A stretch of DNA of 63,920 nucleotides, filler included, from Octopus bimaculoides (GCF_001194135.2; 4 parts of 4 records of this genome joined end to end with filler, not necessarily neighbours in it); one strand, 5' to 3'; shown: positions 3,271 through 23,600, counted from the whole stretch's first letter. Notes: a model not told the origin generated them from the letters alone. Numbers and translations are program-made.

Positions 3271-3555
3271 TAGCACTGACGTTTATAGCACTGTGCTGCT
3301 GACATCTCTTCCAGCTGGCTAACGACACACATTCTGTGTCCGATTAATATTTGCGAGGGGTGGGGGGGTCATCGCTCCCATCCCGTATATAGGACGCTAC
3401 ACTTGGTTGGCAATTATATGTTACGATTCCGTATTGCTACTGTTTATATCTCGCTCAGAGATTTGATATAACTTATTTCTCCTTTTTCAAGATCAGCGAC
3501 GGTTTGTCGCCGGGAAAAGCATATAGTATTTAGCGAGTGGAGTGAGTTTTCATTA

Positions 3556-3602
3556 ACACACGCTGAAGACGAGTAACCACCCAGAAACTCGAGTCCGTGT
3601 GT
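3556..3602 (+). ncRNA. Minimal type I hammerhead ribozyme-like motif (family H1)
   Basis: Stem I ACACACG/CGTGTGT (7 bp), core CTGAAGA, 14-nt stem II with 2 mismatches, GAAA, palindromic stem III ACTCGAGT, GTC cleavage triplet (C3595). Confidence 0.75.
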
Positions 3603-3693
3603 ATCACGTAAGGCTAGAGATGGGAGCGATGACTGAATTACGACGTGCTTGTCTCACAGAGAACGTTTCCAGTTACTTTTGGGTACTCCCTCG

Positions 3694-3694
3694 A

Positions 3695-3725
<31 letters not shown>

Positions 3726-3777
3726 TATATATAGAAAGAGAGAGATACACACATCTATACATAGCCATACACACGCG

Positions 3778-3818
<41 letters not shown>

Positions 3819-3937
3819 ACACACACGCTCACTCACAGAGTTTTAAAGAATAATCAGAAAGATTGTTGGTGGTGTTTCAATCATTTCATTACGGTCATCT
3901 CGGAAGTCAATAATCAATAACCTCAGATAGCATGTTG

Positions 3938-3999
<62 letters not shown>

Positions 4000-4030
4000 G
4001 CGCATATATACATGCATACACACACACTCA
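3694..4030. repeat. (GATA)n and (CA)n microsatellites
   Basis: Direct reading of the sequence. Confidence 0.95.
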
Positions 4031-4269
4031 TAAAAAATATATGCATATCTGTGTATGTTTATGTGTGAGAGCGTGCATCTGTACATTAAAAAAGGACAAA
4101 GAATTATAAACGAGAATTATTTTCTTCATTTAACAAGTCTGTATAGTTTTCTTTCCTCCATAATTTTCAGGTAGTTTCTACGTCAGCTCCAGAAGCGTGA
4201 CGTCATAGACGGTTAGCAATGTATGGATGCTCTAGTGTTATAATTGGTATCTTTTGTGTCGGATGTTAT

Positions 4270-5301
4270 TTAGTTAGATGTTGTGTTCTTTCCAAGCTGG
4301 TAGTTAGTAACTTTTTGAACTTTTAGTGATGTGAGTATCTGAGCGAATGTTGAAGTAATTTATAGTTGTGTAATGTCTTATAACTGGTTAAATTATTCAA
4401 CTTCAGTCATTATTTCATGCATTCTTAAAAGCTTACCGTGACTAATGTTCTTTGCTGGATGCACCAACCGTTGTTTTTGTTATTGATATTCTATTGTTAA
4501 CTTGTTATAGTTTTAGATAATTTGCTTCCTGCTAACCTTCCTGGTCCAAATCCTGTCGTAACCAACTTTGCCTTTTCCTTCTTTCTGGTTCAATATCATA
4601 CCAGTCCTGTACTGGAGCCAGTCCTGGATAGGGATGGGCTCTGTCAGGTTTGAAATTGTCACGGACAAAAGCACTAGAATTTTACACTAAATAGGTTCTA
4701 TATTCCTTGATTGAATTCTGCTGAAATTGGCTCTGCTTTTAATCTTTCTGAGTTCGAAAGAGTACTATTTTATTTGTTAAAATCTCGAACCTGGAGATTC
4801 TGGTTCCCATGGCGGAAATGTGACTGATATCCCAAGACTTTCTTATGGATGCTGCACAAGTTCGCCACAAGTTTAACTCTACCCCCATCCCAGCAACTGC
4901 TGGTGCTCATTTCACTTGAGTAGTCTGGATCAACACAAAATGAAGCAGTAAAAATTTTTTAACAAGTGGAAAATCTTGAAGGATTTAGGGTCTAACTTTA
5001 GGACTGAAAGTTATACTAAAACCCGAACTGGAGTCCCCATGATTGTACTGAAGGTACCCTGCTCTTCATCTAGAATAAAGACCCGATTTTGTAAAAGCTA
5101 GGAGTTCAGTTGCTCGTTGATCATGTGTATTAGCTTTTCATTACCTTGCCAAATAAGAACTTCAGTAATTGACCATCTTTGTTCTCTCACTGTAACTCAA
5201 ATGCATCTATAGTCAAGACATTTAATTCTGGTTCATTTAAATGAATACGAAATGTAAAACAACTCACGAATGCAAACACCAAACGCAAACACCAAAAGCA
5301 T
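4270..5301 (-). CDS. Candidate small multi-exon gene for a secreted protein (exons about 5301-5268, 4673-4537, 4490 or 4454-4437, 4338-4270)
   Basis: GT-AG sites join in frame to give MLLVFAFGVCILLLSVTISNLTEPIPIQDWLQYRTGMILNQKEGKGKVGYDRIWTRK...ILTSLKVQKVTNYQLGKNTTSN*. The signal-peptide-like N-terminus is only created by the splice. No homology recognised. Confidence 0.35.
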
Positions 5302-5640
5302 TGCATAATTGCCGAGTGTTTCTTTACCTCGTGGTGCTGAATTCAAAAGCTCCAATGAAAATAACCATATTTGTGAAAAAACAAACGACAGCTAGCCAGG
5401 TAGAGAGAGAGGGGGAGGGAGAGAAAATTAGTTAACTAGCAACGATATTTTTTTTTTTAAGGCATCAGAAAAACTTGTCAGATGGCAGCTAACTTCAATG
5501 CGAAAGGCCACATAGAAGTTAACATTTAAATTTTTTTTAAAATGGAGAAAAAGATATACTGCTAAACCTCTTATTTTATAAAATATGATGGTAGTCTCTC
5601 GTAGTTCCAGAAAGACGTTCTGCAATTTAGTTGTTGTTGT

Positions 5641-5856
5641 AAGGCAGCAAACTGGCAGAAACGTGAGTAAGCCGGGCGAAATGCTTAGCGGTATTTCGTC
5701 TGCCGTTACGTTCTGAATTCAAACTCCGCCGAGGTCGACTTTGCCTTTCATCCTTTCGAGGTCGATAAATTAAGTACCAGTTGCGTACTGGGGGTCGATC
5801 TAATCGACTGGCCCCCTCCCCCAAAATTTTGGGCCTCGTGCCTAGAGTAGAAAATA
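5641..5856 (+). mobile_element. SINE family B (GGCGGTGAGCTGGCAGAAACG...GAGTTCAAATTCC...GGGGTCGAT)
   Basis: B-box-like GTTCAAA motif; near-identical to 36047-36272, with further copies at 53.1, 58.7, 59.3-59.7 and 61.3-62.1 kb. Confidence 0.85.
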
Positions 5857-5924
5857 ATTTTTTTCTTGTTGTACGACTTGCACAAAAGCTTTCCTTTATA
5901 GTGATCAAATGTCTATGCTGTACA

Positions 5925-6112
5925 TTAGTTCACTCCTTCCATCAAATCCACGTTGCCTAACAGGTGTACTGTGTGCCACACGTCAGGTCTCGAAGTGATC
6001 GCAGAGCAACGTGAGATGAAGTATTTGGCTCAAGAACACAACGCATCATTCGTTCCAGGAATTGAACCCACGATCTCGCGTGCAACACCCTAACCACTAG
6101 GTCATGCGCCCT
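5925..6112 (-). mobile_element. tRNA-derived SINE family C fragment
   Basis: tRNA-like head on the minus strand (TAGTGGTTAGGG...GGTTCAATTCC); related to 27730-28095 and 31725-31982. Confidence 0.65.
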
Positions 6113-6949
6113 TAGTTTATAAAATACAATTATTTATAAAAGCAATAAACTTTATAAAAAGGGTGAACGGCAGAGCTTCGGAATAATAAACACGACCGTG
6201 ATTAAAAATTCTTTCGAAAATTACTTTGGATTTATGTTTTGAATACAACAGTAATTATTTTAAACGATAAATTTACAAGTGAAGATAAAGTAATATAAAT
6301 AAATATTTACAAAATTCGCCAACTTGTTTAAAATAAAGGCTATATGTAAAATTAAATCGGCAAAAATCTATTCAGATACAATAATTTTCCCTCAAACGCT
6401 TTGCATCTTTCAGAAGGCCATACTTAACCCTTCCCATGACCGTTGTTTTGTTTCCTCAACTCTAGTTTTGTGAGAGATGAAGAAGTATAGCATGACTTGT
6501 ATAAAGAAAGGAAAAACTTTATTCAGACCAGAAATTTGGCCGAACGATTACAAGAGAGTGGACTCCGCTAAAGATCAGGTTGTTATGTTAAAAAGGGCGA
6601 CAAATTACGACCCCTTCTGTAGAAATAGTTCAGCTTAAAGATAAATGAGACCTGTAAGGCTTATCTATACATCCTTAGAAGTCTTCGATATTATCCCTAA
6701 GACAGAATGGATTATGGAACTTACTATGATACTACATGGAGACGAAATCTTGAAATGGTGCCCTTATATCTAAAGAGGTTATGGGGCTAGCTATTTTACG
6801 TGTTTTGCCAACCAATAAATGTTATCACACGCAACAAGGAGAGCGGTTTTATTCTTCTACTTATATAACTTACATCCTTATACATATTTACTTATATGTT
6901 GCATGAGACACGCCAATGCATCCAAGTCGTCCGAAGATAAATATGGTTA

Positions 6950-6990
6950 AACATGTGTGTGTGTGTGTGTATGTGTGTGTGCGTGCGTGC

Positions 6991-7027
<37 letters not shown>

Positions 7028-7296
7028 CGTGTACAAACGGGCATTCAAACACAAGCAACAAGACAAAATAGAATAAAAACAATAAAGAAGAAGAAGAAGA
7101 AGAAGAAGAAGAAGAAGAAGAAGAAGAAGAAGAAGAAGAAGAATGCCAAATGAAGGGAAAATAGTCAAAAGAGGAACGAAGAGAAAGAGGAAAACACACA
7201 CACACATGTATATATGTATATTTATATACATATATATGTATATATATATGTGTGTGTGATATATATACCTGTGTATATATATACAAATATGCATAC

Positions 7297-7327
<31 letters not shown>

Positions 7328-7370
7328 TGCATGTATGAATGTATGTATGTATGTGTGTATGTATGTATAT
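6950..7370. repeat. Microsatellite cluster: (TG)n, (GAA)n about 20 units, (TATG)n
   Basis: Direct reading; explains the spurious low-complexity ORFs. Confidence 0.95.
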
Positions 7371-8019
7371 GAACACAGAGGGCGAAAGAGTTAGAAATAG
7401 ATAGAGAACGAGACAGGGAATCGGAGAGCTTGAAAGATACAGAATGTAAGAAACTTATATAAAAAGGTAGGGAGAGGAAAGACAAAAAATGTGAACGGAA
7501 AAAGAGACAGTAACAATAGAGAGAAACATAAAGCGACAAATAAAGAGAAAAGGAGAAAATGCTTGAAAGGAAACAGGAATAGAGACGGAGTGAGATAAAC
7601 AGAAAGCGGCTGATTGAGAGAAAGAAAGAGGTTGAGATAGAGAGGGGAAGAGAGAGTGAAAGGGAAAGTGAGTAAGTGAGAAACTATCCTTTGTGGTTCA
7701 AGCCTTTGTAAAATGCCAATATTGAAACGTCCAGTTCAGAGAAATCTGAAAGAACCGTGAAAAACCGTGCAAGTGAGCGGAAAATGTTTTACGTCTTTCC
7801 TGGTCACCTGATTCGTTGGTTCGTACGACAATGGCAAAACAGTTCAAGCCAACATGGCTGCTCTATTAGCTACTGTCGTGTGCTTCAATGAGTTCAACTC
7901 TAGCTCACTCTATCTCTTTCCCTCCCTCTATCTACCTCTCTATCTCCCTCCCACTTTCTCTCGTTTTCTCTCTTTCACTCAAGCTTTCTCTTCATATCAT
8001 TTACTTTTATAGAATATAA

Positions 8020-8050
<31 letters not shown>

Positions 8051-8133
8051 AGTGAGTGAGTGTGTGTGTGTGTGCGCGTGTGTGTACAGAGGTGTGTGAG
8101 TGAATGTGTGTGTGTGTGTGCGCGTGTGTGTAC

Positions 8134-8178
<45 letters not shown>

Positions 8179-9005
8179 NNNNNNNNNNNNNNNNNNNNNN
8201 NNNNNNNNNNNNNNNNNNNNNNNNNNNNNNNNNNNNNNNNNNNNNNNNNNNNNNNNNNNNNNNNNNNNNNNNNNNNNNNNNNNNNNNNNNNNNNNNNNNN
8301 NNNNNNNNNNNNNNNNNNNNNNNNNNNNNNNNNNNNNNNNNNNNNNNNNNNNNNNNNNNNNNNNNNNNNNNNNNNNNNNNNNNNNNNNNNNNNNNNNNNN
8401 NNNNNNNNNNNNNNNNNNNNNNNNNNNNNNNNNNNNNNNNNNNNNNNNNNNNNNNNNNNNNNNNNNNNNNNNNNNNNNNNNNNNNNNNNNNNNNNNNNNN
8501 NNNNNNNNNNNNNNNNNNNNNNNNNNNNNNNNNNNNNNNNNNNNNNNNNNNNNNNNNNNNNNNNNNNNNNNNNNNNNNNNNNNNNNNNNNNNNNNNNNNN
8601 NNNNNNNNNNNNNNNNNNNNNNNNNNNNNNNNNNNNNNNNNNNNNNNNNNNNNNNNNNNNNNNNNNNNNNNNNNNNNNNNNNNNNNNNNNNNNNNNNNNN
8701 NNNNNNNNNNNNNNNNNNNNNNNNNNNNNNNNNNNNNNNNNNNNNNNNNNNNNNATATATATATATATATATATACGAATATATATTGAATACACGTGTG
8801 TGTGTGTATATATTTACATATATATACAGAGAGAGAGAGATAAAGAGAGAGAGAAAGAGAGAGAAATACATGCTTACATACATACATACATACATACTAA
8901 CTCTAACGCACATGGGTTTCGTGTGTGTATCTTTTGAGTGTGTGAGAGCGTGAGTAAGCTTCTACACGTATGTTCCTGTGATGCATCTGGTTGTGTTTGG
9001 TCAAG

Positions 9006-9059
<54 letters not shown>

Positions 9060-10394
9060 TGTGTATGTATGTGTGCGTGTATGCACACATATGTACCAAT
9101 GTTCGCACGCTTTAAGGAAACTTGGGGTGTAATAGTTGAACCATATACCAACATACAAACACATACATATATACACATGATTTACTAGCTGTGAATATAT
9201 GTAGAATATATGTAACAGTGTATAAACCAACAGATACGAAACGTAAAATAGAATACAATTAATATTTTCCACCTGGTTTCACAGATTTTCTCACTTTCTT
9301 CGCTAAATTGCCTATATTTTTGGACACCAACTTTTATATCTTCGTGCGTGTGTGTGTGTGCGTATGTGTGAGAGAGAGAGTGTGTGAGTATGTGTGCAAA
9401 TACATGCATGTAGGTAATACGCATAATAATTTACACTTCATATATCTTTATACATATAAACGAGAGTGCGTGCACACACATTTATGTGTGTGTATATGTA
9501 TTGTATGTATAAATACATATATACTTACAAATATGTGTTTGCGTGTATGTATGTATATACATATATATATGCATAAGTATGTATATATGTGTGCGTGTAC
9601 ATATATATATACACATACACACACACACACACACAAGCACACAAACACACACATGCACAGACACACACGCACACACACACACACATACACACACACAACA
9701 CACACCTTTTACCTTATATGGTTTCCTTGTTTCAATCCTTAGACTGCTACCATGGTAGGGTATCTCCTTGAAAGGGTTTAGTTGACCAAATCGAACGCAG
9801 TACGTATTCCATTTTTTTAAGCGTGTAACTTATTCTATCGATATCTTATATCGAACTGCATCAAAAATATCTTACAAAGTTTTCTTGCAAATTGTATTCA
9901 CAGATTTCGGTCGATCTGACTCCATGCTACAAGTCAAGTGTGATTCAATTCAAAACCAAGTAGTCTTCAAGCGAATTTCTAAATCATTCAGAAAAGAAAT
10001 ATGTGCGCTCTGTGTGTGCATATGTGTGTGCACGCGTGTGTGCGTCTATGTGTGTGTACGCGCGCGCGCGCATGTGTGGAAGGTGTTCTTGTTAATGTAA
10101 TGTGCGGACACAAACATATTTATGTATGAGGCTCTATGAGGACGTGCTTGCGTGTGTGCAGGCGTGCGCTTATGCGTATTTTGTAAGGATGCATTTGTGC
10201 AAGTATACATGAGACGGTAAAGCGATGAACTTAACATAAACCATTCCCCCACACCCCCAAAAACGTCCTCTACTACCCCACCAGAAAAAACTACAGAGCT
10301 TAGACGCGACTCACATAAGGGCATTGAACATAATTCTGAATTGGTGTTGCCATTACACTCACAAACACTATAGAATGCTCGATTGTCATATTTT

Positions 10395-10880
10395 CAATGG
10401 TTTATTCAAGAGTGTCCTTGACTTTGAGAGGCTGCCTGAGAATGGTGAGTTGATATGAACTGTATCCAGCCTAAATATCTGTGAGTCGATATTTGCAGTG
10501 AAAACGTGTAAGGAGTTGAAATTCCAGACGATTGGAGATCTGCAGAGGAACGACTAGGATAAATTATTGGTACTAGGTCTAGTGGGTAAGATACGATATG
10601 AGTGATAAGAGGAAGAGGGAAGATTATGGACGGGCTTCGATGGAAGGGAGTATGCAACAAGCTGGCTTACTGGAACAGAGGCCGTTGTAATAGGGATAGA
10701 ATGAACACAGTAAGAAGGCATTGCGCATACGGTTGCAGATTATAGCGTATTGGTGAATAAGTATTTTTCTAATCAGTCGAATGACCTGCTTTTGTAGGGT
10801 ATTTTCGAGGTCTCCAGTCATAGAAGCAGTGCAGGTTTGATATGAGGTATCTAGATTGCATATGGATAGCACCTGTATTT
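10395..10880 (-). mobile_element. 3' fragment of a CR1/L2-like LINE
   Basis: Minus-strand remnants resembling the post-RT C-terminal FYRYYNGLCSSKLA motif and STHRY..QLT; heavily decayed. Confidence 0.55.
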
Positions 10881-10890
10881 GTGAAAGATA

Positions 10891-10937
<47 letters not shown>

Positions 10938-11369
10938 AAGAGAGAGATCAAAGTGGTATCATCTGTATGAGAATGAGCGCCGTTAGAAATGTTAACAAAC
11001 GTGTATCACACACTCTTTGTCCTGCACACTGCACATGAAGAAGAGTGTATGAGACACAGATGAAACTTAGGACACAAGAGAATTGATAATGTATAGAGTA
11101 CAGATCGTCCTGTAAACTCTAACGCATTGTTAAAATGTAAGAAGAGATATAAGAAGCATATAAGTCTAGCTAATCCATAAAGCTGACAAATATACCATAA
11201 CCAATGATTTCCAGACACTGTTTCTTCTTTATGCTTCATATCTCGCTTCTGTTTCTTTGAACTACCTAGCTGTATACACTTCTAACACGAGTTGACAAAA
11301 TGTACTAATCAATTAATTAACAATGCGCTATAAAGTATTTGAGACGGGAATAGTTTTAAAATATATGTT

Positions 11370-11490
11370 ATTGGCACTCCGTCGCTTACGACGTCGCGGG
11401 TTCCAGTTGATCTGATCAACTGAACAGCCTGCTCGTGAAATTAACGTGCAAGTGGCTGAGCACTCCACAGACACGTGTACCCTTAACGAC
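11370..11490 (-). mobile_element. SINE family C, 3' portion
   Basis: TTGGCACTCCGTCGCTTACGACGTC...CACGTGTACCCTTAACG, nearly identical to 27731-27848. Confidence 0.85.
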
Positions 11491-11717
11491 CATGAGGAAT
11501 CCATTGGTGCGACTCCCAGATTGCTATCTTGTAAGGTGTGGATTTCTATAGATGCAACACACACACACACGCACACACACATACACACACACACTCACAA
11601 ATTCAGCTTTACAATATGTATAGATGTATCAAACAGTTCATTATTCATTTATTCCATCATTTTTTTTTTCAAAGTCCTTATTTTATAATTTTATATATCT
11701 CACTTTCCTTTACATTA

Positions 11718-12142
11718 GACTAGCAGAGATACCCGGCCTTGCTCGGGATTAAAACGGCATAGATTTTTATTGCTTTACTTGTTTCAGTCATGTGACTGCG
11801 GCCATGGTGGAGCACCGTCGTTGATCGAAATAATAGGTGATCGTTTGCGAAGGATCGTATCTACAGTGAACACTTAGGATTTTTGCTCTGATAACTTCTG
11901 CTCTCTCCCATGTTCACGCACGACCAGCTATATGTCGCTATGAGTAGAGCAACGGATTCAGCAAATTTGGAAATTAGTTGTGGAGAAACGGAGAATATCG
12001 ATTATATTGTGTATCACTCACTAAAAAGACGAAATTTTAAAAATCTGTTATCTCTCTGTCTCTCTTTACACCGTCGCTAGAAGGGGACTTAACTCATGGT
12101 CCGACAGGAAAATTGTTAGAAGTTATGGTTTTAAATTATTTT
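11718..12142 (+). mobile_element. Possible Helentron/HINE-like non-autonomous element
   Basis: Begins ACTAGCAGAGATACCCGGCCTTGCTCGGG, resembling HINE-type termini with a short hairpin; the other end is lost in a gap. Confidence 0.35.
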
Positions 12143-12619
12143 NNNNNNNNNNNNNNNNNNNNNNNNNNNNNNNNNNNNNNNNNNNNNNNNNNNNNNNNNN
12201 NNNNNNNNNNNNNNNNNNNNNNNNNNNNNNNNNNNNNNNNNNNNNNNNNNNNNNNNNNNNNNNNNNNNNNNNNNNNNNNNNNNNNNNNNNNNNNNNNNNN
12301 NNNNNNNNNNNNNNNNNNNNNNNNNNNNNNNNNNNNNNNNNNNNNNNNNNNNNNNNNNNNNNNNNNNNNNNNNNNNNNNNNNNNNNNNNNNNNNNNNNNN
12401 NNNNNNNNNNNNNNNNNNNNNNNNNNNNNNNNNNNNNNNNNNNNNNNNNNNNNNNNNNNNNNNNNNNNNNNNNNNNNNNNNNNNNNNNNNNNNNNNNNNN
12501 NNNNNNNNNNNNNNNNNNNNNNNNNNNNNNNNNNNNNNNNNNNNNNNNNNNNNNNNNNNNNNNNNNNNNNNNNNNNNNNNNNNAAATCCTTCATTGCACG
12601 GTTTAGGCGCTAACTTCAC

Positions 12620-13870
12620 CTTAATTACATTTTACATTTTCATGATCTTTTTTTCAATTTCTACATTTTTTCTGTACTGTATTATAGTTCTTGCTAGTTT
12701 TCTCTTCGGTGTTACTTTCTGATTTCCATCACTAATCTCTTCTGCTGTTGCTGATGTTTCCATCTTTCCCTTCTCTGCTTGCCTCTCACGCGATGTTGTT
12801 GTCACTTCTCTTCTATCTTCCTTTTTTTCTGCTCTTTTACTTTCTCCTCCGTGCTAATTGCTGGTATCGCTCTCTGTTTTCTCTCTTCGTCTTTCTCGCT
12901 TAATTTTGCCGACGTCTCATTTCTTTTCTGCCCGTTCGCTTTTCCTCCTTTTGGTAACCCTTGTCTCTCCTCTACACTTTTCTTTTCTTTGTGGGATTCT
13001 TTGGTGGTGAGTCCATATTTTCTTGTCTTTTCTTCCTCTTCACCATTGTGTATCTTTCTTCCATATTTTCCACTGGCCTCTGCTCCTCTATGCCTTGCAC
13101 GTCTACCTCTTCTTGCTGTTCCATCTCCGTCACCTTCTCTTTGTGTTTCTGGGGACACTTAGTTCCCTTGTTCCACATTGATAGCATACGGGAGGTCTTC
13201 CTTCCACTACAACTCTCAGCTTCATCTCGTCTGGCAACACCAATTTCTCTGCAATTTTGTGGAGGTCTGGTAAACTGATGTGAACCGACACCTCAAGGCC
13301 GTATCCCTACCAATGTACCTCCGTAGTTCTTGTAATTTTCAGCATTTTGGTACCCTCTTCTGTATTAAAGAGGATGGCTGCCACCAGTCACGCCACGTCA
13401 ATTTCCGGGGGCACTCTACCACTCCTCACTCTGGCCGCACGTTTCCCACACTAGGTTGGTAGTAGTACCCACTCAGTTGATCTCAAAGGCACAGTGGAAT
13501 GTTTTATCGCTTCTTCTTCACTCACGAAGTGTACCTCCACTATGCCGTATTTCTTTCCTTTGGTGTTGTACGTCGTTAGATCTTTGACTTCTCTCAAGCA
13601 TTCTTCGACTGCCTCTACTACTGCTATTTCAACTCTTTTTGTTGCAATAGACAGCGTTCTGTATATAACAGACCGCTCTGTCTTTTCAATAACTTCCTCA
13701 GGTGACGTCAGCCTCAGGCTGTCTCCTTCCTTTCTTAACAGTTCATTGTACTTCTTGAAATTTGTTTCTTCCAGCTAAATTTCTCTAACTTTCAAGACAT
13801 CCGCCGTTAAACCTTTCCCAGTCACTGCAGCGTAACTGCCTGCTGGAACTGGTTGACATTCCATAACGAT
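12620..13870 (-). mobile_element. Decayed gag-like/ORF1 element, copy 1 (RRM-like region, zinc knuckle, charged tail)
   Basis: KKYGIVEVHFVSEEEAIKH, EGRPPVCYQCG and a K/E-rich tail; several stop codons; homologous to 14300-15250. Confidence 0.7.
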
Positions 13871-14299
13871 ATTATCCACAACTTCACCCATAAATAGGGA
13901 AGAAAAAATAAAAATTCAGGTAACAATAAATTCAATAATTCAGTAATATAACAGTTAGGTGCGGTAGACCTTCAACAATTTAACAATAACAAGACTTACA
14001 TGAAGCGAACACACATTAATTGCAACAGGGAATCAAATGACTCGACACAACACCAACGTCCTGATTTCTTTTATAAGGCACAAGGCCTCTATAAAGACGG
14101 AACAACACAAAAAAACAGACAAAATAATACAATGGGGTACATAAAAACACATATCGAATGAAATTATGGATACAATGAAAAAATGAGGATGGGATGGCTT
14201 ACCTGCCCCTCCCCCCCATAAGCAGATAGTTTCATTTTACTGTTTTTAAATAGTTTTACTTAGTTCAATATCCTGTCTTGCATCTGTTGGTTTTCATTT

Positions 14300-15250
14300 T
14301 TTTCCTTTTTTTCTTAAACAAAGTCACTGTTTAAACCATATATTCCAATATATCTTCGAATGCCACCACCGGCGGCAACACATCGTGAAGAAACTGTACC
14401 ATTGTCACATCTATCTTTTCCCCCAAACAACTCCTTCAATCTTTCTCCTCTTTCTCTTTCCAGCAGGACAGCTTTCATATCTTCATTGTCCTCCTTGGGC
14501 GCCAATTTAATCTTAATTACGTCCTTCATCTTTGCAATTTTTTTTCTATCCTTACACTTTTTGTGTATTGTATTACAGTATGTCTTAGATTTTTCCCTTT
14601 TGGTGTCACTCTCTGTTTTCTTTCACCAATCTCTTCTTCTGTCACTGATATTCCTATCTCTGTATGTCTCTCATTCTCTCTTTCATTTTCCTTTTTCTTT
14701 AGTACTCTCTCCTGCTTGCTAGATGATGGTAACGGTCTCTGCGTTAGCTCCTGTTGACCTTTCATTTTTTTCTCTGCTTGTTCGTTTTTCCATGTTTTCC
14801 ACTCTGCGTCTCCTCTTCAATTGCCTTTCTTTTCTTCCTAGGACTCATTGGTGGTGAGTCTGTGTTACTTTTCTTCCTCTTTACTACTGTATACTGTTCT
14901 TTCATTTTTGCTCCTCTACGGTTAAACCCTCTTCTTCTTGACGTTCCTTCTCTATCTCCTCCTCTTCCTGTTTCCGGAGACACTTAGCTTTCATATGTCC
15001 CCTTACTCCACATAGATAGCATACGGGAGGTCTTACTTCCACCACAATTCTCAACCTCGTCACATCCGGTAGTACCAGTTCCTCTGCAATTTTGTGGAGA
15101 TCTGGTAAGCTTATATGAACCGATACCTCCAGTCCATATCCCCAACAATTCACTTCCGTAGTTCTTGTGATCTTCAATATTAGTGTGCCGTCCTCAATGC
15201 ATGAAGTGTAATTGTTGGGCCTAAGGCCCAATGAAGAGCCCTCCAAAGGA
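14300..15250 (-). mobile_element. Decayed gag-like/ORF1 element, copy 2 (CX2CX4HX4C knuckle)
   Basis: VRPPVCYLCGVRGHMKAKC is a canonical CCHC knuckle; the sequence aligns with copy 1 from LKITRTTEV onward. Confidence 0.75.
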
Positions 15251-15295
15251 GCTAGCTTAAAAGCCGCCCTATCAAGCGGCTTTTAAGCTAGTGTG

Positions 15296-15330
<35 letters not shown>

Positions 15331-15390
15331 ATGTATATATGTATATGATACGTATATTAATGTATATATGCATATGTCCATATACATACA

Positions 15391-15434
<44 letters not shown>

Positions 15435-15588
15435 GTAGTATATTGCCACTTAAGTGTGGCTGACCCCTAGGGGTGGATGTTACTGTTGCTTTTAGCCCCA
15501 GGAGGACATCTCCTCCAGCTGGCTTATCGACACACTACTGTGTCCTGTTTGCCAAGGGAAGTTATCCCTCCCATCATGATCTGTAGCA

Positions 15589-15633
15589 CGAACGGACCCG
15601 GGTTTCAGGGTTATTTCCCTTCGTCGGCGTTCG
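15589..15633 (-). ncRNA. Hammerhead-like motif H1 (U4C core variant)
   Basis: CGAACG-CCGACGA-AGGG AAATAA CCCT-GAAA-CCCGGGT-C-CGTTCG: all three stems pair perfectly. Confidence 0.75.
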
Positions 15634-15803
15634 ATAGCCACTGATCTTTGATGAGAGAGATAAAATCTTGGCAATCTTATATCTACTTTTCCAGTGAAAT
15701 TCTTCACTGATATCGAAAAGGTGAAAGCATTGCTTGTTTTCACTGGAAAAGTAGATATAAGATTGCCAAGATTTTATTTCTCTCATCAAAGATCAGTGGC
15801 TAT

Positions 15804-15848
15804 CGAACGCCGACGAAAGGAAATAACCCTGAAACCCGGGTCCGTTCG
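15804..15848 (+). ncRNA. Hammerhead-like motif H1 (U4C core variant), mirror copy
   Basis: Same as 15589-15633 except for one stem II mismatch; GTC site at C15842. Confidence 0.7.
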
Positions 15849-16287
15849 TGCTACAGATCATGATGGGAGGGATAACTTCCCTTGGCAAACAGGACACAGT
15901 AGTGTGTCGATAAGCCAGCTGGAGGAGATGTCCTCCTGGGGCTAAAAGCAACAGTAACATCCACCCCTAGGGATCAGCCACACTTAAGTGGCAATATACG
16001 ACACTTTATCGTGCAGTTACTGTTAATACTTCATTTAGAGAANNNNNNNNNNNNNNNNNNNNNNNNNNNNNNNNNNNNNNNNNNNNNNNNNNNNNNNNNN
16101 NNNNNNNNNNNNNNNNNNNNNNNNNNNNNNNNNNNNNNNNNNNNNNNNNNNNNNNNNNNNNNNNNNNNNNNNNNNNNNNNNNNNNNNNNNNNNNNNNNNN
16201 NNNNNNNNNNNNNNNNNNNNNNNNNNNNNNNNNNNNNNNNNNNNNNNNNNNNNNNNNNNNNNNNNNNNNNNNNNNNNNNNNNNNNGC

Positions 16288-16577
16288 ACTATATATTTGG
16301 TGTTCACTTGCTTCAGGTTTATTTTATACTAATCGAATTTCGGCCAGAGTTCTTTCGTCACACTTCTGAGACCTCATCAGTGGTCCTTCGCTTTCTTCTT
16401 TCTTTTTTGTGTGTCTTTCCTTACTAATGATCAGCCATTTTGGAAAGACACACAAAAAAAAAGAAAGAAGAAAACAAAGGATCACTGATGAGGTCACAGA
16501 AGTGTGACGAAAGAATTCTGGCCGAAATACGATTAGTATAAAATAAAGGTGAAGCAAGTGAAACCAAATATATAGTA
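16288..16577. repeat. Inverted-repeat element with about 135-bp arms and a 21-bp spacer, carrying a hammerhead-like motif (family H2) in each arm
   Basis: Arms at 16288-16420 and 16442-16577 are reverse complementary. Motifs CTGATGA-G-GTCACA GAAG TGTGAC-GAAAG lie at 16479-16523 (+) and 16342-16386 (-). Confidence 0.85.
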
Positions 16578-16675
16578 CGTGTGTTTTTATTGGCTAAACT
16601 AGCAACATAACCATCCCCAGGTACAACAATATCTGTTTCAACACACGAATTCACATTAAAAATCATGCAAAACGA

Positions 16676-16711
<36 letters not shown>

Positions 16712-17225
16712 ATAATTAAAATTAGGGTTCAGCAAAAATTGCTTCACCACATACCGAAAATTAGAAATAGCAGTAAGTATGTATGTATATATGTATATAT
16801 ACATATATGTATGTATATATANNNNNNNNNNNNNNNNNNNNNNNNNNNNNNNNNNNNNNNNNNNNNNNNNNNNNNNNNNNNNNNNNNNNNNNNNNNNNNN
16901 NNNNNNNNNNNNNNNNNNNNNNNNNNNNNNNNNNNNNNNNNNNNNNNNNNNNNNNNNNNNNNNNNNNNNNNNNNNNNNNNNNNNNNNNNNNNNNNNNNNN
17001 NNNNNNNNNNNNNNNNNNNNNNNNNNNNNNNNNNNNNNNNNNNNNNNNNNNNNNNNNNNNNNNNNNNNNNNNNNNNNNNNNNNNNNNNNNNNNNNNNNNN
17101 NNNNNNNNNNNNNNNNNNNNNNNNNNNNNNNNNNNNNNNNNNNNNNNNNNNNNNNNNNNNNNNNNNNNNNNNNNNNNNNNNNNNNNNNNNNNNNNNNNNN
17201 NNNNNNNNNNNNNNNNNNNNNNNNN

Positions 17226-17264
<39 letters not shown>

Positions 17265-17450
17265 CATATATATATTTATGCATCAACGAAAAAATCCAGT
17301 GAAATACATGAAGGTAGAGTCAGCAGCGGTTCAATGGAGTGCTGGTATGTGGATGAGGAGAGGTGCTGGAAGTTCGGGAAGTCGTTCAGATATGCAAGTC
17401 CAAAGAGTAGGAAGTTCAGTCAGGATCAAACTAAGGTAACCACGTGAGCG

Positions 17451-17850
17451 TATAATATATAGTTAAAATTAATAGAAAAGAAAAAGACGAAGACAGGTGT
17501 ATGAACAACAAAGAAGTGTATAAGTTTGACGCTTGGGAAAATGAAAAAGTCTTTTACGTTTCGAGCCTATGCTCTTCAACAGAAAGGAAAAAGAGAAAAT
17601 CAAAAGAAGGAGTAGATTTCGTTGGACCGCTGAAATCTACAAAATCTCCATGATGGACCGCTGAAATCTACAAGTTTTTTTTTCATTCTTTCTCTGCTGA
17701 TTTTCTCTTATTCCTTTTTGTTGAAAAGCGTAGGCTTGAAACGTAAAAGACTTTTGCATTTTCCCCGAGCGTCAAACTAATGCACTTGCTTGTTGTTCAT
17801 ACACCTGTCTTCGTCTTTTGTTTTTCTATAAATTTCAACTATATTTATAT
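17451..17850. repeat. Inverted-repeat element with about 150-bp arms, carrying a hammerhead-like motif (family H3) in each arm
   Basis: Arms at about 17451-17605 and 17690-17850. Motifs at 17551-17586 (-) and 17714-17749 (+). A central direct repeat TGGACCGCTGAAATCTACA occurs twice. Confidence 0.85.
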
Positions 17851-18148
17851 ATGTATGTATGAATGTTTGTATGTATGTATGTATGTATGTATGTATGTAT
17901 GTATGTATGCGTATATATATATATAATTGAAGAAATTTGGGTCAAGAAGGAGTACCGTTGGACATTTATTTATTATTCGCTACAATTATTTCGATGCAAC
18001 GTAGTTATCCAAGAATACAAGTATTTGATTATGAAATTGCTTGTTTGCATAATGAGATTTTGTTGTGTTTCCGCAGGTGATATACGAGTGTTGTCTCCGT
18101 TAGTTTAAAATCGTCGACTTCAAGGCCATCTCCTCTGTTTGTCGTGGT

Positions 18149-18705
18149 TTATAATATAGGTGGCCCGTTAGCAATTAAAATATAGGGGCAAGTTAATAAA
18201 CAAGGTTACAAATTAATACCGGCAATTTCTAGGAAAAAGAGTGAAAAACGACTCGAATAGCCACACAAAGCACTAACTAATTTACGAAAAGCGAGGAAGC
18301 ACGCTAAGAGCACCTTTCCATGGTGAGATAAACACACGAAATGAAGTAAACAGAAATATCCTTATCACGTGATTTCGAACTCTGATCATTATAATCTTAG
18401 ATCTCATCAGAAGATCTCGCTGTTACTCCGGGTTAAAGGGTACAACGCCTCATACAACGCATGAGAAAAACCGTTGAAAGCTGGCGCTAATTCAAAACTG
18501 TCGAAGTGTATAGTATAAATACAATAAGATATTATAATATATTTAGCGTGTCTCCTCGCTTTTCGTAAATTCATAAGGTTAATGCCTTGTGTTGCTATTC
18601 GAGTTGTTTTTCACTCTTATTTCTAGCAATTGCCGGTACTAATTTGTATCCTTATTTATTAACTTGCCTTTATGTTTTAATTGCTAACAGGCTACCTATA
18701 TTATA
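18149..18705. mobile_element. MITE-like element with about 155-bp imperfect terminal inverted repeats and an internal hammerhead-like motif (H4)
   Basis: 18149-18307 is roughly the reverse complement of 18543-18705. Internal minus-strand ATCTT-CTGATGA-(27 nt)-GAAATCACGTGATA-AGGAT at 18358-18415. Confidence 0.75.
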
Positions 18706-18750
18706 ATATATTTAATATCTTATAGTATCTTACTGTGTGTATACACATAT

Positions 18751-19145
18751 GGGCGCTGGAGTGGCTGTGTGGTAAGTAGCTTGCTTACCAACCATATGGC
18801 TCCAGGTTCAGTCTCACTGCGTGGCACCTTGGGCAAGTGTCTTCTACTACAGCCACGGACCGACCAAAGCCTTGTGGGCGGATTTGGTAGGCGGAAACTG
18901 AAATAAGCTCGTCGTATATATATAATATGTATGTGTGTATTTGTGTGTTTGTGTGTGTCCGCCCCACCATCGCTTAACAACCGATGTTGGTATGTTTACG
19001 TCCCCGTAACCTAGCAGTTCGGCAAAAGTGCCGATAGAATAAGTACTAGGCTTACAAAAGAATAAGTCCTGGGGTGAATTTGTTCGACTAAAGGTGGTGT
19101 TCCAGCATGGCCAGTCAAATGATTGAAACAAATAGAAGAATAAAA

Positions 19146-19148
<3 letters not shown>
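18751..19148 (+). mobile_element. tRNA-derived SINE family A, full length
   Basis: A-box TGGCTGTGTGG, B-box GGTTCAGTC, CCTTGGGCAAG core, internal (TA)/(TG) tract, 3' CAGTCAAATGA(C/T)TGAAAC; at least 8 copies in the window. Confidence 0.9.
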
Positions 19149-19198
<50 letters not shown>

Positions 19199-19705
19199 CA
19201 CATACACATACGTACAACGGTGTTTGTGTATGCGTGTACCTTGTTATGGGAATTAGGTCATTCATATTCTCATATCGCGCATATTACAAAATATGAACTG
19301 CGTAACAAAATGCGTCGAGTGGACGAATAATAGTAAATTGAAGCAAAAATGTAACTAAATGAGAAAACCACAGAAGAAAATAAATTTGGGAACTGTTGCA
19401 CTGCTGGATGAAGATTGGCTTGAAATATTTTAAGACAAAAAAGAAAAACACAAATAGAACAGAGTATGGTATAAGGTTCGGATGTAATCAAAGAATGAGT
19501 TAAGAAATGTATTCCGGGTAAGTCCCTTAGGACGGTCTTATCTAAAGAAATAAATGTCAGGCGTTGGCGGATAGAGAACATAAAATGGCAGGTTTTGTAT
19601 TTCCGGGTAACTGGGAAATCATAATCTACTGGCTACTAAGTTAATAGGTTGAGCGGTTGATATGCAAATATTTATGAATATGTGTTTTTACGAGATGTAT
19701 GTATC

Positions 19706-19758
<53 letters not shown>

Positions 19759-20045
19759 CATGCATACATACAATACACATACCTCGCTCTTTCTCTTCTC
19801 TCTCTTTTTCTGCATAATATATCTGTGTGTTCCCTCATGTATATATGCATATATACATGTATTTACATATGTATATATACATGCATACATACATGCAAAC
19901 ATACATAGATACACGCATACACGTTTGGATGTATGCATGTTTATGTATATATATATATGTATACATATATATATGTATATGTATTTATGTGTGTACATAT
20001 ATATATATATTATACGCACATACACACATATATATACATATAGAG

Positions 20046-20084
<39 letters not shown>

Positions 20085-20171
20085 TAGAGAGATAGAGAGA
20101 TAGACGCGAATATTTCATACTTTGAGAAAACAAAGTTGAGAAGCATGTATTTTCAAATCGATAACGTGTCA

Positions 20172-20203
<32 letters not shown>

Positions 20204-21008
20204 GTGTGTACATGTTTAATGTATATGCGTATGTAAGTGTATGTGTGTGTGTGTACATATTCATATATATGTACACACTTGCGTACACATACATTCACAC
20301 ACTCACACACTTACACATGCATACATTCGTCATGGCCAAGTCCAGCGATTGTTATAAGTTAAAGAACATAACATCTAGATATATTTATTTATGGACATAG
20401 CTTTGCAACGAAGTCGTTTTGGCTTCGGACTCGCAGCGCAGAACCTGTGACAAGTATTTCTTATTGCCTCAGATTAACCAATTCTCTGTAAATGCAATAT
20501 TTTTCTTCAGCCCAAGGACTCATAAGACCGTTCCTTCCTGAACGAGACGCCGTTCTGTTGCAGAGTTAAGGCTAACAATTTTGCGATTCGGTTGGCTCGT
20601 CTCCATGCGAGTAGAGTATGTAAATTAATGTATGTAATGTATAATATTAACGTATGTAAATTGATACTGGAAAATACTTCTCCTACCCCACCCACACCCA
20701 AAAAGAAAAAATTTCATGTGAAAGAATTTTTGTTTTTTAAATCAGAAAAAATAGGCGGAAAATGTTATCTATCCCTGAACTTAAATTCATTTTACTAAGC
20801 TCGAAAGATTTATTTGAGAGGCTTTTCTCATATACTAGCATACCCGTGTCGTCGAAAATGCCAACATTTGTGTTGATGATAGAAAATGGGCATCAAAAGG
20901 ATGAGAGGAACCACTGATCAATGTCAGCAATCTAGCAAATATATGTATGTATACAAAACTGAAGCAAGCACTTGAACAGATATAGTTGTAACAGTTGAAA
21001 ATATTTTC

Positions 21009-21042
<34 letters not shown>

Positions 21043-21734
21043 NNNNNNNNNNNNNNNNNNNNNNNNNNNNNNNNNNNNNNNNNNNNNNNNNNNNNNNNNN
21101 NNNNNNNNNNNNNNNNNNNNNNNNNNNNNNNNNNNNNNNNNNNNNNNNNNNNNNNNNNNNNNNNNNNNNNNNNNNNNNNNNNNNNNNNNNNNNNNNNNNN
21201 NNNNNNNNNNNNNNNNNNNNNNNNNNNNNNNNNNNNNNNNNNNNNNNNNNNNNNNNNNNNNNNNNNNNNNNNNNNNNNNNNNNNNNNNNNNNNNNNNNNN
21301 NNNNNNNNNNNNNNNNNNNNNNNNNNNNNNNNNNNNNNNNNNNNNNNNNNNNNNNNNNNNNNNNNNNNNNNNNNNNNNNNNNNNNNNNNNNNNNNNNNNN
21401 NNNNNNNNNNNNNNNNNNNNNNNNNNNNNNNNNNNNNNNNNNNNNNNNNNNNNNNNNNNNNNNNNNNNNNNNNNNNNNNNNNNNNNNNNNNNNNATCAGA
21501 CAAATTTTGCACAGTGGATGCTCTTCCTGTTACCAACCCTTAGCACTTTTCAAGTAAGAAAATATTTCACCGTACCCAAACATAATTACATGGACGATTG
21601 AAAACAAAGAACACCTTTTGCATGACATTGACTCTCGCTTACAACTATTACCTAATGTCAAGGCAATGGGAAAGTAAAACACTGAAACACACACACGCAT
21701 ATGCATACACACACACACATATATATAGTAAAGT

Positions 21735-22290
21735 TAATATGCCAACAGAATGTGGCTGTCCTATAAAGGACGATGTTACTGTTGTTTTAATCCCGTATAG
21801 CATTAGCAAGGGATGTCATTGCTCCCATCTAGCCCTACGTGATACTCACAGACCTGGGTTTCTAGGTGGTTACCCTTCTTCCGTGTAACAAAACCACAAG
21901 CTAGCGACAAAAGATCTCTCCACTTGCAAATACTACATACTCTTTAAGCCACACACTTTCACTGATCTCGTATAGAGAAAAAAATTGTTTTAAACCTCTG
22001 AGCGAGAGGTATACAGTAACAGTACCGAATAGTAATTTTTTATGCCAACAGTATGTGGCAGTCCTATAAAGGACGATGTTACTGTTATTTTAACCCCAGG
22101 AAAACATCTTTTCGAGCTGGCTATCAACACACAATACGTGTCCATATAGCATTTGCAAGGAAGGTCATCGCTCTTATCTCTAGCCTTAAATGATACTCAC
22201 AGACCTAGGTTTCTGTGTGGTCACCTGTCCTCAGTGTGATAAAACTACAAGCTAGCAACGAAAGCTCTCTCCACTCGCAAATACTATATA
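21735..22290 (-). repeat. Two tandem, diverged copies of the H1-bearing element
   Basis: 21735-21960 and 22020-22290 are homologous to each other and to the 15.4-kb arm. Hammerhead motifs at 21846-21888 and 22197-22239 on the minus strand. Confidence 0.8.
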
Positions 22291-22399
22291 TTCTTTATAT
22301 ATATATATATTTATGATGTGTTTGTGTAGATATGTATATACCCATATATATATATATATATATGTGTATGTATATATACAAATGTACGCATCGCATCTA

Positions 22400-22945
22400 A
22401 AGGCGTAGCTGTGTCGTAAGAAGCTTGCTTCCAAGTCATATGGTTCCGGGTTTAGTCCCACTGCGTGGCACTTGTGAGTGGATTTACTAGATGGAAACTG
22501 AAAGGAGCCCAATGTATGTATGTGTGTGTGCGTGTGTGTATGTGAGTTACAGAGGGGGAGCGCTAAGCAGAGATAAGTAAATTACAGAGCTGATGTAGGT
22601 GAATACACACCGTTTGTCAACAAACGGGATTTATTTTCCGTGACAAAACCCGGTGAGTAGCTTATTCACTGGTTCGAACGTGCCTCAAGCATATTCACAC
22701 TAATAACATTACAATGTGTGTGTATGTGTGTCATTATGTCTGTATTTGACTCCCACCACGGCTTGACAACCGATGTTGGTGTGTTTACATCCCTGTAGCT
22801 TATCGGTTCGACAAAAGATACCAATAGAATAAGTACTAAGCTTACAAAGAATAAGTCCTGGAGTCGATTTCTTCGACTAAAAGACCTTTTAAGGTGGTGC
22901 ACCAGCATGGCCGCAGTCAAATGACTGAAGCAAGTAAAAGAATAC
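22400..22945 (+). mobile_element. SINE family A, degenerate and interrupted
   Basis: Head at 22400-22510 and tail at 22745-22945. Confidence 0.75.
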
Positions 22946-23600
22946 ACACACACACACGCACACGCACACACGCACACGCACACAGACACACACACACACA
23001 CACANNNNNNNNNNNNNNNNNNNNNNNNNNNNNNNNNNNNNNNNNNNNNNNNNNNNNNNNNNNNNNNNNNNNNNNNNNNNNNNNNNNNNNNNNNNNNNNN
23101 NNNNNNNNNNNNNNNNNNNNNNNNNNNNNNNNNNNNNNNNNNNNNNNNNNNNNNNNNNNNNNNNNNNNNNNNNNNNNNNNNNNNNNNNNNNNNNNNNNNN
23201 NNNNNNNNNNNNNNNNNNNNNNNNNNNNNNNNNNNNNNNNNNNNNNNNNNNNNNNNNNNNNNNNNNNNNNNNNNNNNNNNNNNNNNNNNNNNNNNNNNNN
23301 NNNNNNNNNNNNNNNNNNNNNNNNNNNNNNNNNNNNNNNNNNNNNNNNNNNNNNNNNNNNNNNNNNNNNNNNNNNNNNNNNNNNNNNNNNNNNNNNNNNN
23401 NNNNNNNNNNNNNNNNNNNNNNNNNNNNNNNNNNNNNNNNNNNNNNNNNNNNNNNNNNNNNNNNNNNNNNNNNNNNNNNNNNNNNNNNNNNNNNNNNNNN
23501 NNNNNNNNNNNNNNNNNNNNNNNNNNNNNNNNNNNNNNNNNNNNNNNNNNNNNNNNNNNNNNNNNNNNNNNNNNNNNNNNNNNNNNNNNNNNNNNNNNNN

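Follow-up and report, generated by a model that had tools for sequence, protein, structure and literature searches.

A diverged family of hammerhead-bearing repeats in the genome of Octopus bimaculoides, probably related to animal retrozymes

A stretch of 63,920 nucleotides (nt), filler included, in which four parts of four records of the Octopus bimaculoides genome (GCF_001194135.2) are joined end to end (here the window), carries five copies of a repeat family, H1, each with a module resembling a hammerhead ribozyme. We found that all five modules are homologous parts of one noncoding repeat of about 350 nt with shared flanks. On the basis of the module geometry, the conservation of the catalytic core, the pairing of helices I and III, a long hairpin around the module, a folding bias toward one strand, and the architecture of the insertions, we propose, with a probability of roughly three in four, that H1 comprises non-autonomous octopus retroelements of the class of the non-long-terminal-repeat (non-LTR) retrozymes or derivatives of Penelope-like elements (PLEs).

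Five modules with type I hammerhead geometry

The first-pass annotation of the window had reported five motifs with a common layout. All five were recovered at the same coordinates by direct reading and by a scan with a custom descriptor (helix I of 4 bp or more, CNGANGA, N6-29, GAAA, N2-11, U-H, and the returning strand of helix I), with every subsegment as it had been described; the predicted cleavage sites that had been named, C3595 and C15842, are also correctly placed (Table 1). The scan yielded one further match, at 18358-18415 on the minus strand, which is unrelated to the five. Over 300 dinucleotide shuffles, requiring a helix I of 4 bp or more gave 0.26 matches per piece and requiring 5 bp or more gave 0.11, versus six observed matches. 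Because the five motifs share descent, their number is by itself weak evidence, and a chance founder match to so loose a descriptor would occur in about 1 window in 10. The nonrandom signal is instead the invariance of the core across lineages, together with the retained pairing of helix I.

Table 1. Modules, repeat copies, and other principal features; positions are those of the window unless another source is named
Feature	Position	Strand	Core and predicted cleavage site	Segments, helix I 5' strand to helix I 3' strand	Remarks
U1 module	3556-3602	+	CUGAAGA / GAAA / GUC; C17 at 3595	ACACACG, CUGAAGA, CGAGUAACCACCCA, GAAA, CUCGAG, UC, CGUGUGU	Helix I 7 bp; palindrome ACUCGAGU; helix II lost; 14.3 bits against RF00163
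U2 module	15589-15633	-	CCGACGA (C at position 4); C17 at 15595	CGAACG, CCGACGA, AGGGAAAUAACCCU, GAAA, CCCGGG, UC, CGUUCG	Three canonical helices; helix II AGGG/CCCU with loop AAAUAA; palindrome ACCCGGGU
U3 module	15804-15848	+	Mirror copy of U2; C17 at 15842	As U2 except the 14-nt segment, AAGGAAAUAACCCU (second base A, not G)	Helix II weakened by the single G-to-A change; palindrome ACCCGGGU, same as U2
U4 module	21846-21888	-	CGGAAGA (G at position 4); C17 at 21851	UUACA, CGGAAGA, AGGGUAACCACCUA, GAAA, CCCAGG, UC, UGUGA	Helix II GGGU/ACCU; palindrome ACCCAGGU imperfect, one mismatch
U5 module	22197-22239	-	CUGAGGA; C17 at 22202	UCACA, CUGAGGA, CAGGUGACCACACA, GAAA, CCUAGG, UC, UGUGA	Palindrome ACCUAGGU; helix II nearly lost
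Inverted 5'-truncated copy beside U1	3290-3386	-			"Post" and X segments only, no hammerhead; outer limit of about 3290 approximate
U1 locus, sense part	3388-3690	+			Tail of one unit (about 45 nt), then the U1 unit; ends at (GATA)n
Left copy of head-to-head pair, with U2	15428-15737	-			Outward 3' end abuts (TA)n
Right copy of head-to-head pair, with U3	15738-16042	+			Continues into the start of the next unit
Partial head-to-tail tandem	21725-22297	-			About 1.6 units; (TA)n on both sides
Long hairpin around U3	15763-15888	+			Extended helix I, z = -5.7
Long hairpin around U5	22146-22287	-			Extended helix I, z = -4.1
L002 hammerheads	6480-7138 of ENA ERZ25067582, contig ctg10737_22x_l				360-nt tandem plus inverted copy
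Decayed LINE-type retrotransposon	1313-3273	-			Reverse transcriptase fragment at 2253-3025
Tc1/mariner transposase remnant	23601-24467	+			DDE_3, E = 5e-13, frameshifted; cut by gap 23005-23600 and the piece edge

The Rfam type I hammerhead model (RF00163) has 45 positions, made up of a 6-bp helix I, a 7-nt box, a helix II of 4 bp, 6 nt, and 4 bp, GAA, a four-pair palindromic helix III, 1 nt, and the closing 6 bp of helix I. The H1 module fits it without an indel, is identical to it at 23 of the 45 consensus positions, and has a helix III of 2 bp capped by a palindromic tetraloop. When U2 is left out as the twin of U3, so that four independent lineages are compared, 11 of the 12 positions of the canonical core are invariant versus 40 of 114 (35%) other aligned columns (Fisher p = 2e-4). 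Further, the majority consensus of the family regains a CUGAAGA core box together with a helix II of 5 bp and a palindrome free of mismatches. The label "minimal" hammerhead, under which the modules had first been described, does not suit them, as this is the architecture of canonical metazoan type I hammerheads (RF00163) and not that of the minimal hammerhead ribozymes (min-HHRs) of PLEs.

A covariance model trained on nothing but the five H1 copies (R1) recovered hammerheads in another animal. In a scan of 106 kb, it found nothing beyond three near-canonical type I hammerheads, at E values of about 1e-7, in a locus (L002) that had been reached via a Tc1 homologue. Their sequence is GCAUCA CUGACGA GCUCUAAUAAGAGC GAAA CUCGAG UC UGGUGU, and they score 28.7 to 32.3 bits against the Rfam Hammerhead_1 model, just below its gathering score of 34; as in H1, they are laid out as a tandem, here of 360 nt, with an inverted copy.

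Organization of the repeat unit and of its insertions

Read in the hammerhead sense, the unit runs from a 5' spacer (UAUUCGGUACUGUUACUGUAUACC…) through a segment that we term "up" (AUAUAGUAUUUGCGAGUGGAGAGA…), the 45-nt module, a segment that we term "post" (GUAUCACGUAAGGCUAGAGAUGGGAGCGAUGAC…), and the segments X and D15 to a 3' end of the form …GUUGGCAUA…ACUUUAC. Its GC content is 0.40 to 0.46. U1, U4, and U5 are mutually 70 to 82% identical and form one subfamily; U2 and U3 form a second, with flanks 44 to 65% identical to those of the other copies. The units hold no genuine open reading frame (ORF), the open frames within them (96 amino acids [aa] at 21598-21888 and about 55 aa in U2/U3) being devoid of family or homologue support. 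The earlier proposal of a non-autonomous, hammerhead-bearing repeat family is supported.

The copies occur at three loci. In the tandem array, the U5 unit comes first and is 5' truncated, the U4 unit after it is complete, and the predicted cleavage sites of the two lie 351 nt apart. The U2 and U3 copies form a head-to-head pair with their 5' ends central and their 3' ends outward; its 272-nt arms differ by four mismatches, the left (U2) copy extends 38 nt further 5' than its partner, and the unit that follows the 3' end of the U3 copy is cut by a gap at 16043. At the third locus, the U1 unit has a 14-nt deletion in its upstream arm, and the inverted copy beside it is truncated just 3' of the expected position of the module. 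(TA)n adjoins two of the three loci, namely, the tandem array and the U2/U3 palindrome. In published descriptions, PLE insertions are marked by partial tandems with an inverted, 5'-truncated copy alongside, by microsatellites as targets, and by trouble in assembly; this comparison supports the view that the H1 loci are laid out like insertions of PLEs or retrozymes.

Of the six N runs in the piece, four have a microsatellite at one or both ends. No module or repeat unit spans an N run, no reading frame is at issue, and only the unit after U3 enters one; the distances and relative orientation among the three loci rest on scaffolding. An origin of the palindrome at 15428-16009 as an assembly artifact is the less likely reading, the four differences between its arms and the 38-nt extension on the left favoring a real inverted insertion. 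We rejected a reading of the unit as a short interspersed nuclear element (SINE), given the specific geometry of the module and the lack of a tRNA-like or internal-promoter head, as judged by eye only; ARAGORN detected no tRNA-like sequence in the window.

Pairing and folding of the H1 RNA

Three of the six pairs of helix I beside the core have changed on both sides, and 93% of its cells are paired. The complementarity extends well beyond the module, as "up" is complementary to "post," and the module caps the resulting long hairpin, which amounts to an extended helix I. RNAalifold predicts this hairpin from an ordinary MAFFT alignment. Over its 27 pairs, 93.8% of cells are paired versus 38 to 51% when the partner strand is slid, with seven compensatory pairs and 12 pairs that show one-sided, mostly G-U, changes. 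In individual copies, its stability is marked in U3 and U5 (Table 1) and declines through U4 (z = -1.2) to U1 (z = -0.5), the copy with the 14-nt deletion.

The sense strand is more stable than the antisense strand by 6 to 16 kcal/mol in all five copies, and G-U pairs are clearly commoner on the sense strand in U4 and U5. This folding bias points to selection acting on the RNA transcribed in the hammerhead sense. The 351-nt monomer delimited by the predicted cleavage sites folds at -101.5 kcal/mol (z = -3.5).

In the 8-nt palindrome that forms helix III, the outer two pairs are constant and both of the inner pairs change on both sides. As the inner positions are unable to pair within one molecule, their covariation fits action as a dimer. 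Consistent with this, the minimum free energy (MFE) structure of the homodimer is a double hammerhead for U2, U3, and the H1 consensus, as it is for a true hammerhead from another animal.

These results bear on a quite different explanation, in which CNGANGA…GAAA…GUC arose by chance within a hairpin-forming repeat (a foldback, miniature inverted-repeat transposable element [MITE]-like, or SINE-like element) of no ribozyme ancestry. It draws on the 0.11 to 0.26 matches per window that the relaxed descriptor finds in shuffled sequence, on the failure of Rfam to recognize the copies, on the post hoc loosening of the first-pass descriptor at core position 4, and on the lack of structural support for two further hammerhead-like sites, at 16477-16525 and 18358-18415. 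Nevertheless, chance would have to account for an exact match to the 45-position geometry of RF00163, for an invariance of the core across lineages at p = 2e-4, for a consensus that regains both the canonical hammerhead and the double-hammerhead fold, for the retrieval of true hammerheads elsewhere by R1, and for a genomic arrangement that is that of known hammerhead-bearing elements. The sense-biased fold, too, argues for pairing at the level of RNA rather than DNA. We therefore regard a chance origin as improbable.

Decay of the copies and evidence that weighs against the assignment

Several observations weigh against the assignment of H1 to the hammerhead-bearing retroelements. The evidence base is five copies, representing about four lineages. 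A search of the whole piece with Rfam at the gathering threshold (34 bits) matched none of the copies; the best Hammerhead_1 score, 14.3 bits for U1, came from a narrow search and skipped helix II, U2 gave no match at E <= 10 in a 57-nt search, and U4 and U5 gave none in a 521-nt search. The core itself is altered at position 4, where only U1 and U5 have the U, while U2 and U3 have C and U4 has G, and the pair at positions 10.1-11.1 is A-U in U2 and U3 and a C·A or A·A combination in U1, U4, and U5, and never G-C. Only 65% of the cells of helix II are paired, with no compensatory change. Both RNAalifold and the MFE folds of U1 and U4 choose an alternative helix over helix II. TRF does not report the 351-nt, 1.6-unit tandem, and the window contains no ORF for a Penelope-like reverse transcriptase (RT) or GIY-YIG enzyme. 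Finally, some of the covariation is explicable by CpG decay, since the copies that show the changes, U4 and U5, are CpG depleted. A whole-piece Rfam run by E value was swamped by "miRNA" matches to microsatellites.

The observed/expected ratio of CpG is 0.43 to 0.49 in U4/U5, 0.9 in U2/U3, and 1.4 in U1. Two-strand deamination of CpG is expected to turn ACG…CGU at the base of helix I into ACA…UGU and CCGG in helix III into CCAG or CUAG, and these are the changes found. The covariation that had been proposed for stem I accordingly stands in that three of its six pairs changed on both sides, with the reservation that the basal change from G-C to A-U fits CpG decay; that of stem III holds for both inner pairs, with the same reservation for the change from CCGG to CUAG or CCAG. 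Compensatory-looking changes of a non-CpG kind are seen at helix I positions 4 and 5, in the extended hairpin, and at positions 3 and 6 of the U1 palindrome, where U-A replaces C-G.

The 14-nt segment between the two core boxes, previously described as stem II, cannot be upheld as a real stem across the family: it forms a hairpin only in U2 and U4, shows no covariation, and is broken in three of the five copies. Its energies are -3.9 kcal/mol in U2, -2.8 in U4, -1.2 in U5, -0.7 in U3, and 0 in U1, compared with -3.5 for the Rfam consensus. Nor is the core intact in every copy, the U at position 4 being replaced in three of five. This U forms the uridine turn, and its replacement lowers activity in minimal hammerheads. 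A canonical core and an intact helix II do not occur together in any of the five copies: U1 and U5 have a canonical core with helix II lost or nearly so, U2 has intact helices with C at position 4, U3 has the same C and a weakened helix II, and U4 combines its G at position 4 with an imperfect palindrome. Hence, the copies in the window look like relics at different stages of decay, most of them mutationally worn.

Between copies, the module is no better conserved than its surroundings (79% identity versus 77 to 79% in the flanks for U5/U4; 71% versus 59 to 64% for U5/U1), from which we conclude that selection acted on the transcribed source elements and that inserted copies drift. The earlier idea that structure is selected while sequence drifts thus survives insofar as helices I and III still pair, with the selection shifted from the inserted copies, whose modules diverge like their flanks, to the source elements. 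This distinction matters for the stronger proposition that all five copies are working ribozymes under ongoing purifying selection on structure, each of which self-cleaves as a dimer. The core boxes present in every copy, the pairing of helices I and III, and the double-hammerhead folds of the U2 and U3 dimers are what such ribozymes would display. The loss of helix II in U1 and its weakness in U3 and U5, the replacement of U at core position 4 in U2, U3, and U4, conservation of the module no higher than that of the flanks, the lost long hairpin of U1 (z = -0.5), and the CpG decay of U4 and U5 are not; moreover, published dimeric animal hammerheads cleave poorly even when intact. We consider it very improbable that all of the copies are active.

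The alternative helix deserves separate consideration. In U1, U4, and U5, positions 15-18 of the 45-nt A3 alignment (the 5' strand of helix II) can pair with positions 31-34 (the 5' half of the palindrome) and follow the changes of the palindrome, such that GAGU, GGGU, and AGGU, respectively, are fully complementary to ACUC, ACCC, and ACCU. It could be argued that the conserved structure is the long hairpin together with this inner helix and that it serves another role, for example, recognition by an RT or a switch that masks the ribozyme. Indeed, the alternative helix is paired in 85% of cells and has two compensatory pairs, better than helix II, and it is preferred by RNAalifold and in the MFE folds of U1 and U4. 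However, its substitutions are already counted in the palindrome, every such change in U5 is a CpG-type transition, and only three sequences are informative. The complementarity is also trivial, in that helix II (GGG/CCC) and helix III (CCCGGG) share sequence, and the invariant CUGANGA and GAAA boxes would be left unexplained. We judge this to be the least probable of the explanations considered here; the alternative helix may be a by-product of the GGG/CCC shared by helices II and III, compounded by CpG decay in U5, or it may be a masking conformer of the ribozyme.

Comparison with known hammerhead-bearing elements

Among the known systems, H1 best fits the animal non-LTR retrozymes (Cervera and de la Pena 2020, PMC7229834), which include the type I hammerhead repeats of newt/axolotl satellite 2 and Schistosoma Sm-alpha; also close are the PLE min-HHRs, which insert in like manner with a different module, and RF00163, which has the same geometry. 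The canonical metazoan type I hammerhead described by Cervera and de la Pena has a helix I of 6 bp, a helix II of 4 bp, and a helix III of 1 to 2 bp with a small palindromic loop. H1 shares the type I geometry with a palindromic helix III loop, which implies dimeric action, and its 351-nt unit, known from 1.6 tandem units, is comparable to the head-to-tail units of about 170 to 400 nt of the non-LTR retrozymes. It also shares with them a low GC content, a highly self-paired monomer, and the lack of ORFs, LTRs, and a primer-binding site. Unlike them, it occurs as 1.6 tandem units and head-to-head pairs without long arrays, and its modules fall below the Rfam threshold, with core position 4 substituted and helix II broken. 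Cephalopods are absent from the retrozyme paper (0 mentions in PMC7229834).

The PLE min-HHRs are characterized by a bulged nucleotide after A9, a G10.1-C11.1 pair, a helix II of 6 to 8 bp, and a helix I of 4 to 5 bp, and they occur as paired motifs on opposite strands 100 to 700 bp apart (Cervera and de la Pena 2014, PMC4209133). As in these, the 15.2-16.2/loop 3 region of H1 is palindromic, so that dimeric action is expected, the motifs are paired on opposite strands, and they vary strongly in sequence within one genome with compensatory changes. The insertions resemble those of PLEs in combining partial tandems with inverted copies that are 5' truncated, and in often lying at microsatellites. 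In contrast to the min-HHRs, H1 has no bulged nucleotide, G10.1-C11.1 pair, or helix II of 6 to 8 bp; its helix II is at most 4 bp (5 in the consensus), its helix I is 5 to 7 bp and extends into the hairpin of about 27 pairs, and it has a real, if short, helix III. The pseudo-LTR setting of PLEs is also lacking, as no RT/GIY-YIG ORF lies between or near the H1 copies. With RF00163, H1 shares the 45-position architecture, and it differs in its best score of 14.3 bits, short of the gathering score of 34.

A proposed life cycle

On the basis of these likenesses, H1 would be transcribed at more than unit length. Since helix III is too short in the monomer, the 8-nt palindromes of two modules would pair, and in the resulting double hammerhead each module would cut after C17 to release a monomer of about 351 nt. 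A host RNA ligase might then circularize the highly self-paired monomer. Target-primed reverse transcription of this RNA into (TA)n-type microsatellites could be carried out in trans by a Penelope-like RT/GIY-YIG enzyme, and such copying back into microsatellites would leave partial tandems and inverted 5'-truncated copies. Catalysis, the circular RNA, and the mobilizing enzyme are thus predictions by analogy with known elements; even intact, the published dimeric hammerheads of animals cleave poorly in vitro (PMC4209133, PMC7229834).

The U2/U3 lineage was inserted recently, with an undecayed CpG content and only four mismatches between its 272-nt arms, and it retains the three helices and the long hairpin. 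One might go further and take this lineage, with its C at core position 4 and its A10.1-U11.1 pair, to be still mobile and self-cleaving, in which case the complementarity between the 5' strand of helix II and the palindrome, which is specific to H1, could switch the RNA from a monomer with a masked ribozyme to a dimer with an active one. We think this unlikely; if true, the lineage would be a natural example of a hammerhead whose core varies at a position generally regarded as invariant.

H1 elsewhere in O. bimaculoides and implications of the family

A profile of H1 antisense translations found a 54-aa protein of O. bimaculoides, A0A0L8IHK6_OCTBM (P0095), that matches the antisense frame of U2 almost exactly; the protein compares with 15470-15637(+) of the window. 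This match indicates that the H1 family exists in O. bimaculoides, and the "uncharacterized protein" A0A0L8IHK6 is a spurious ORF that runs antisense across a U2-type H1 element. At least one annotated protein of this species is therefore an artifact of an H1-type element. The attribution to a cephalopod family is supported by this antisense frame and by repeats that the window has in common with O. bimaculoides: it shares several with two O. bimaculoides loci, L003 and L004, reached via protein relatives of the LINE fragment described below, at 68 to 88% identity. The hammerhead module was not found in these two loci (40 kb), where the only H1 match is about 85 nt of the 3' part of the unit. 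In L003, at 2914-3330(-) (CM046603.1), these 85 nt comprise D15, the 3' end, and the first 24 nt of the 5' spacer, i.e., a unit junction, and are directly followed by an ORF resembling an RT C terminus (…LDEIRAIDVKTRKIITSTHNFYINCDVDCLYLKHKHGSRGITSI…) and a 1.4-kb gap; Pfam gave no match for this ORF. The junction may be a clue to an autonomous partner or may just be a nested insertion.

Two other routes yielded no further family members. An exact-pattern scan of metagenome contigs from JGI gave four matches, all by chance, in GC-rich bacterial contigs, and the loci L001 and L002, reached via Tc1 transposase homologues, come from other animals, L002 serving as the positive control described above.

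Type I hammerhead repeats are already known in many animals, and as they are well described there, H1 adds a cephalopod family and no new principle; the family is what is new here. Rfam counts 235 type I hammerhead matches in the giant squid genome, and a recent repeat annotation of O. vulgaris does not mention ribozymes. Because H1 is invisible to Rfam at curated thresholds, diverged retrozyme families are probably missing from such counts for cephalopods. The recent proposal that animal retrozymes are mobilized by PLEs gains support from the tandem and head-to-head layout, with (TA)n at two of three loci, and H1-like insertions also go with assembly gaps.

Other features of the window

The two additional hammerhead-like sites each lie within an inverted pair. 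The first pair (16303-16408/16457-16562) is head to head with 106-nt arms that are 92% complementary, and each arm bears a motif differing from H1, at 16477-16525(+) and mirrored at about 16346-16386. This motif consists of CUGAUGA, a bulged G, a 5-bp helix II (GUCAC/GUGAC), GAAA, and a palindrome, AGAAUUCU. Its helix II has the signature of the PLE min-HHRs; the palindrome is followed by G, which is not cleavable, and there is no clear helix I and no Rfam match. The second site, 18358-18415(-), has CUGAUGA … GAAA, a 10-nt palindrome, AUCACGUGAU, and UA, and is set in the longer copy of the inverted pair with arms at 18149-18277 and 18578-18706 (129 nt, 88%). Its helix II segment of 27 nt is poorly paired, its local fold has a z score of +0.2, and it is probably a chance or badly decayed match.

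Coding remnants of other elements are also present, and a Pfam search of the ORFs of the window returned no RT or GIY-YIG domain. Two ORFs of the decayed long interspersed nuclear element (LINE)-type retrotransposon, 2253-2648 and 2645-3025, are 57 to 68% identical to LOC106872847 and LOC106872446 of O. bimaculoides and to an RVT_1-bearing ENA protein. The best named relatives of the fragment are the two O. bimaculoides proteins (57 to 64% identity), and at the DNA level the element is 68 to 73% identical to L003 and L004. A Tc1/mariner transposase remnant (Table 1) lies in the same piece. Direct repeats at 13027-13360 and 14868-15195, 1.84 kb apart and 79% identical, flank a weak CCHC zinc-knuckle ORF, at 14902-15246(-), and K/E-rich ORFs; the region between them may be a gag-like remnant of another retroelement.

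Among the shorter repeats, that at 18758-18918 and 22402-22471 (83% identical) recurs in L003 (3393-3553) and L004 (about 12143-12220). By eye, this repeat resembles a tRNA-derived SINE head, but ARAGORN recognized no tRNA-like structure in it. An inverted repeat at 17457-17541/17760-17844 (85 nt, 88%, with a 218-nt spacer) is MITE or foldback like and matches L004 at 5514-5688. Dense (TG)n, (TATG)n, (TA)n, (GA)n, and (GATA)n tracts give rise to dozens of spurious subthreshold Rfam miRNA matches (mir-297, mir-466, and others), and microsatellites coincide with four of the six assembly gaps.

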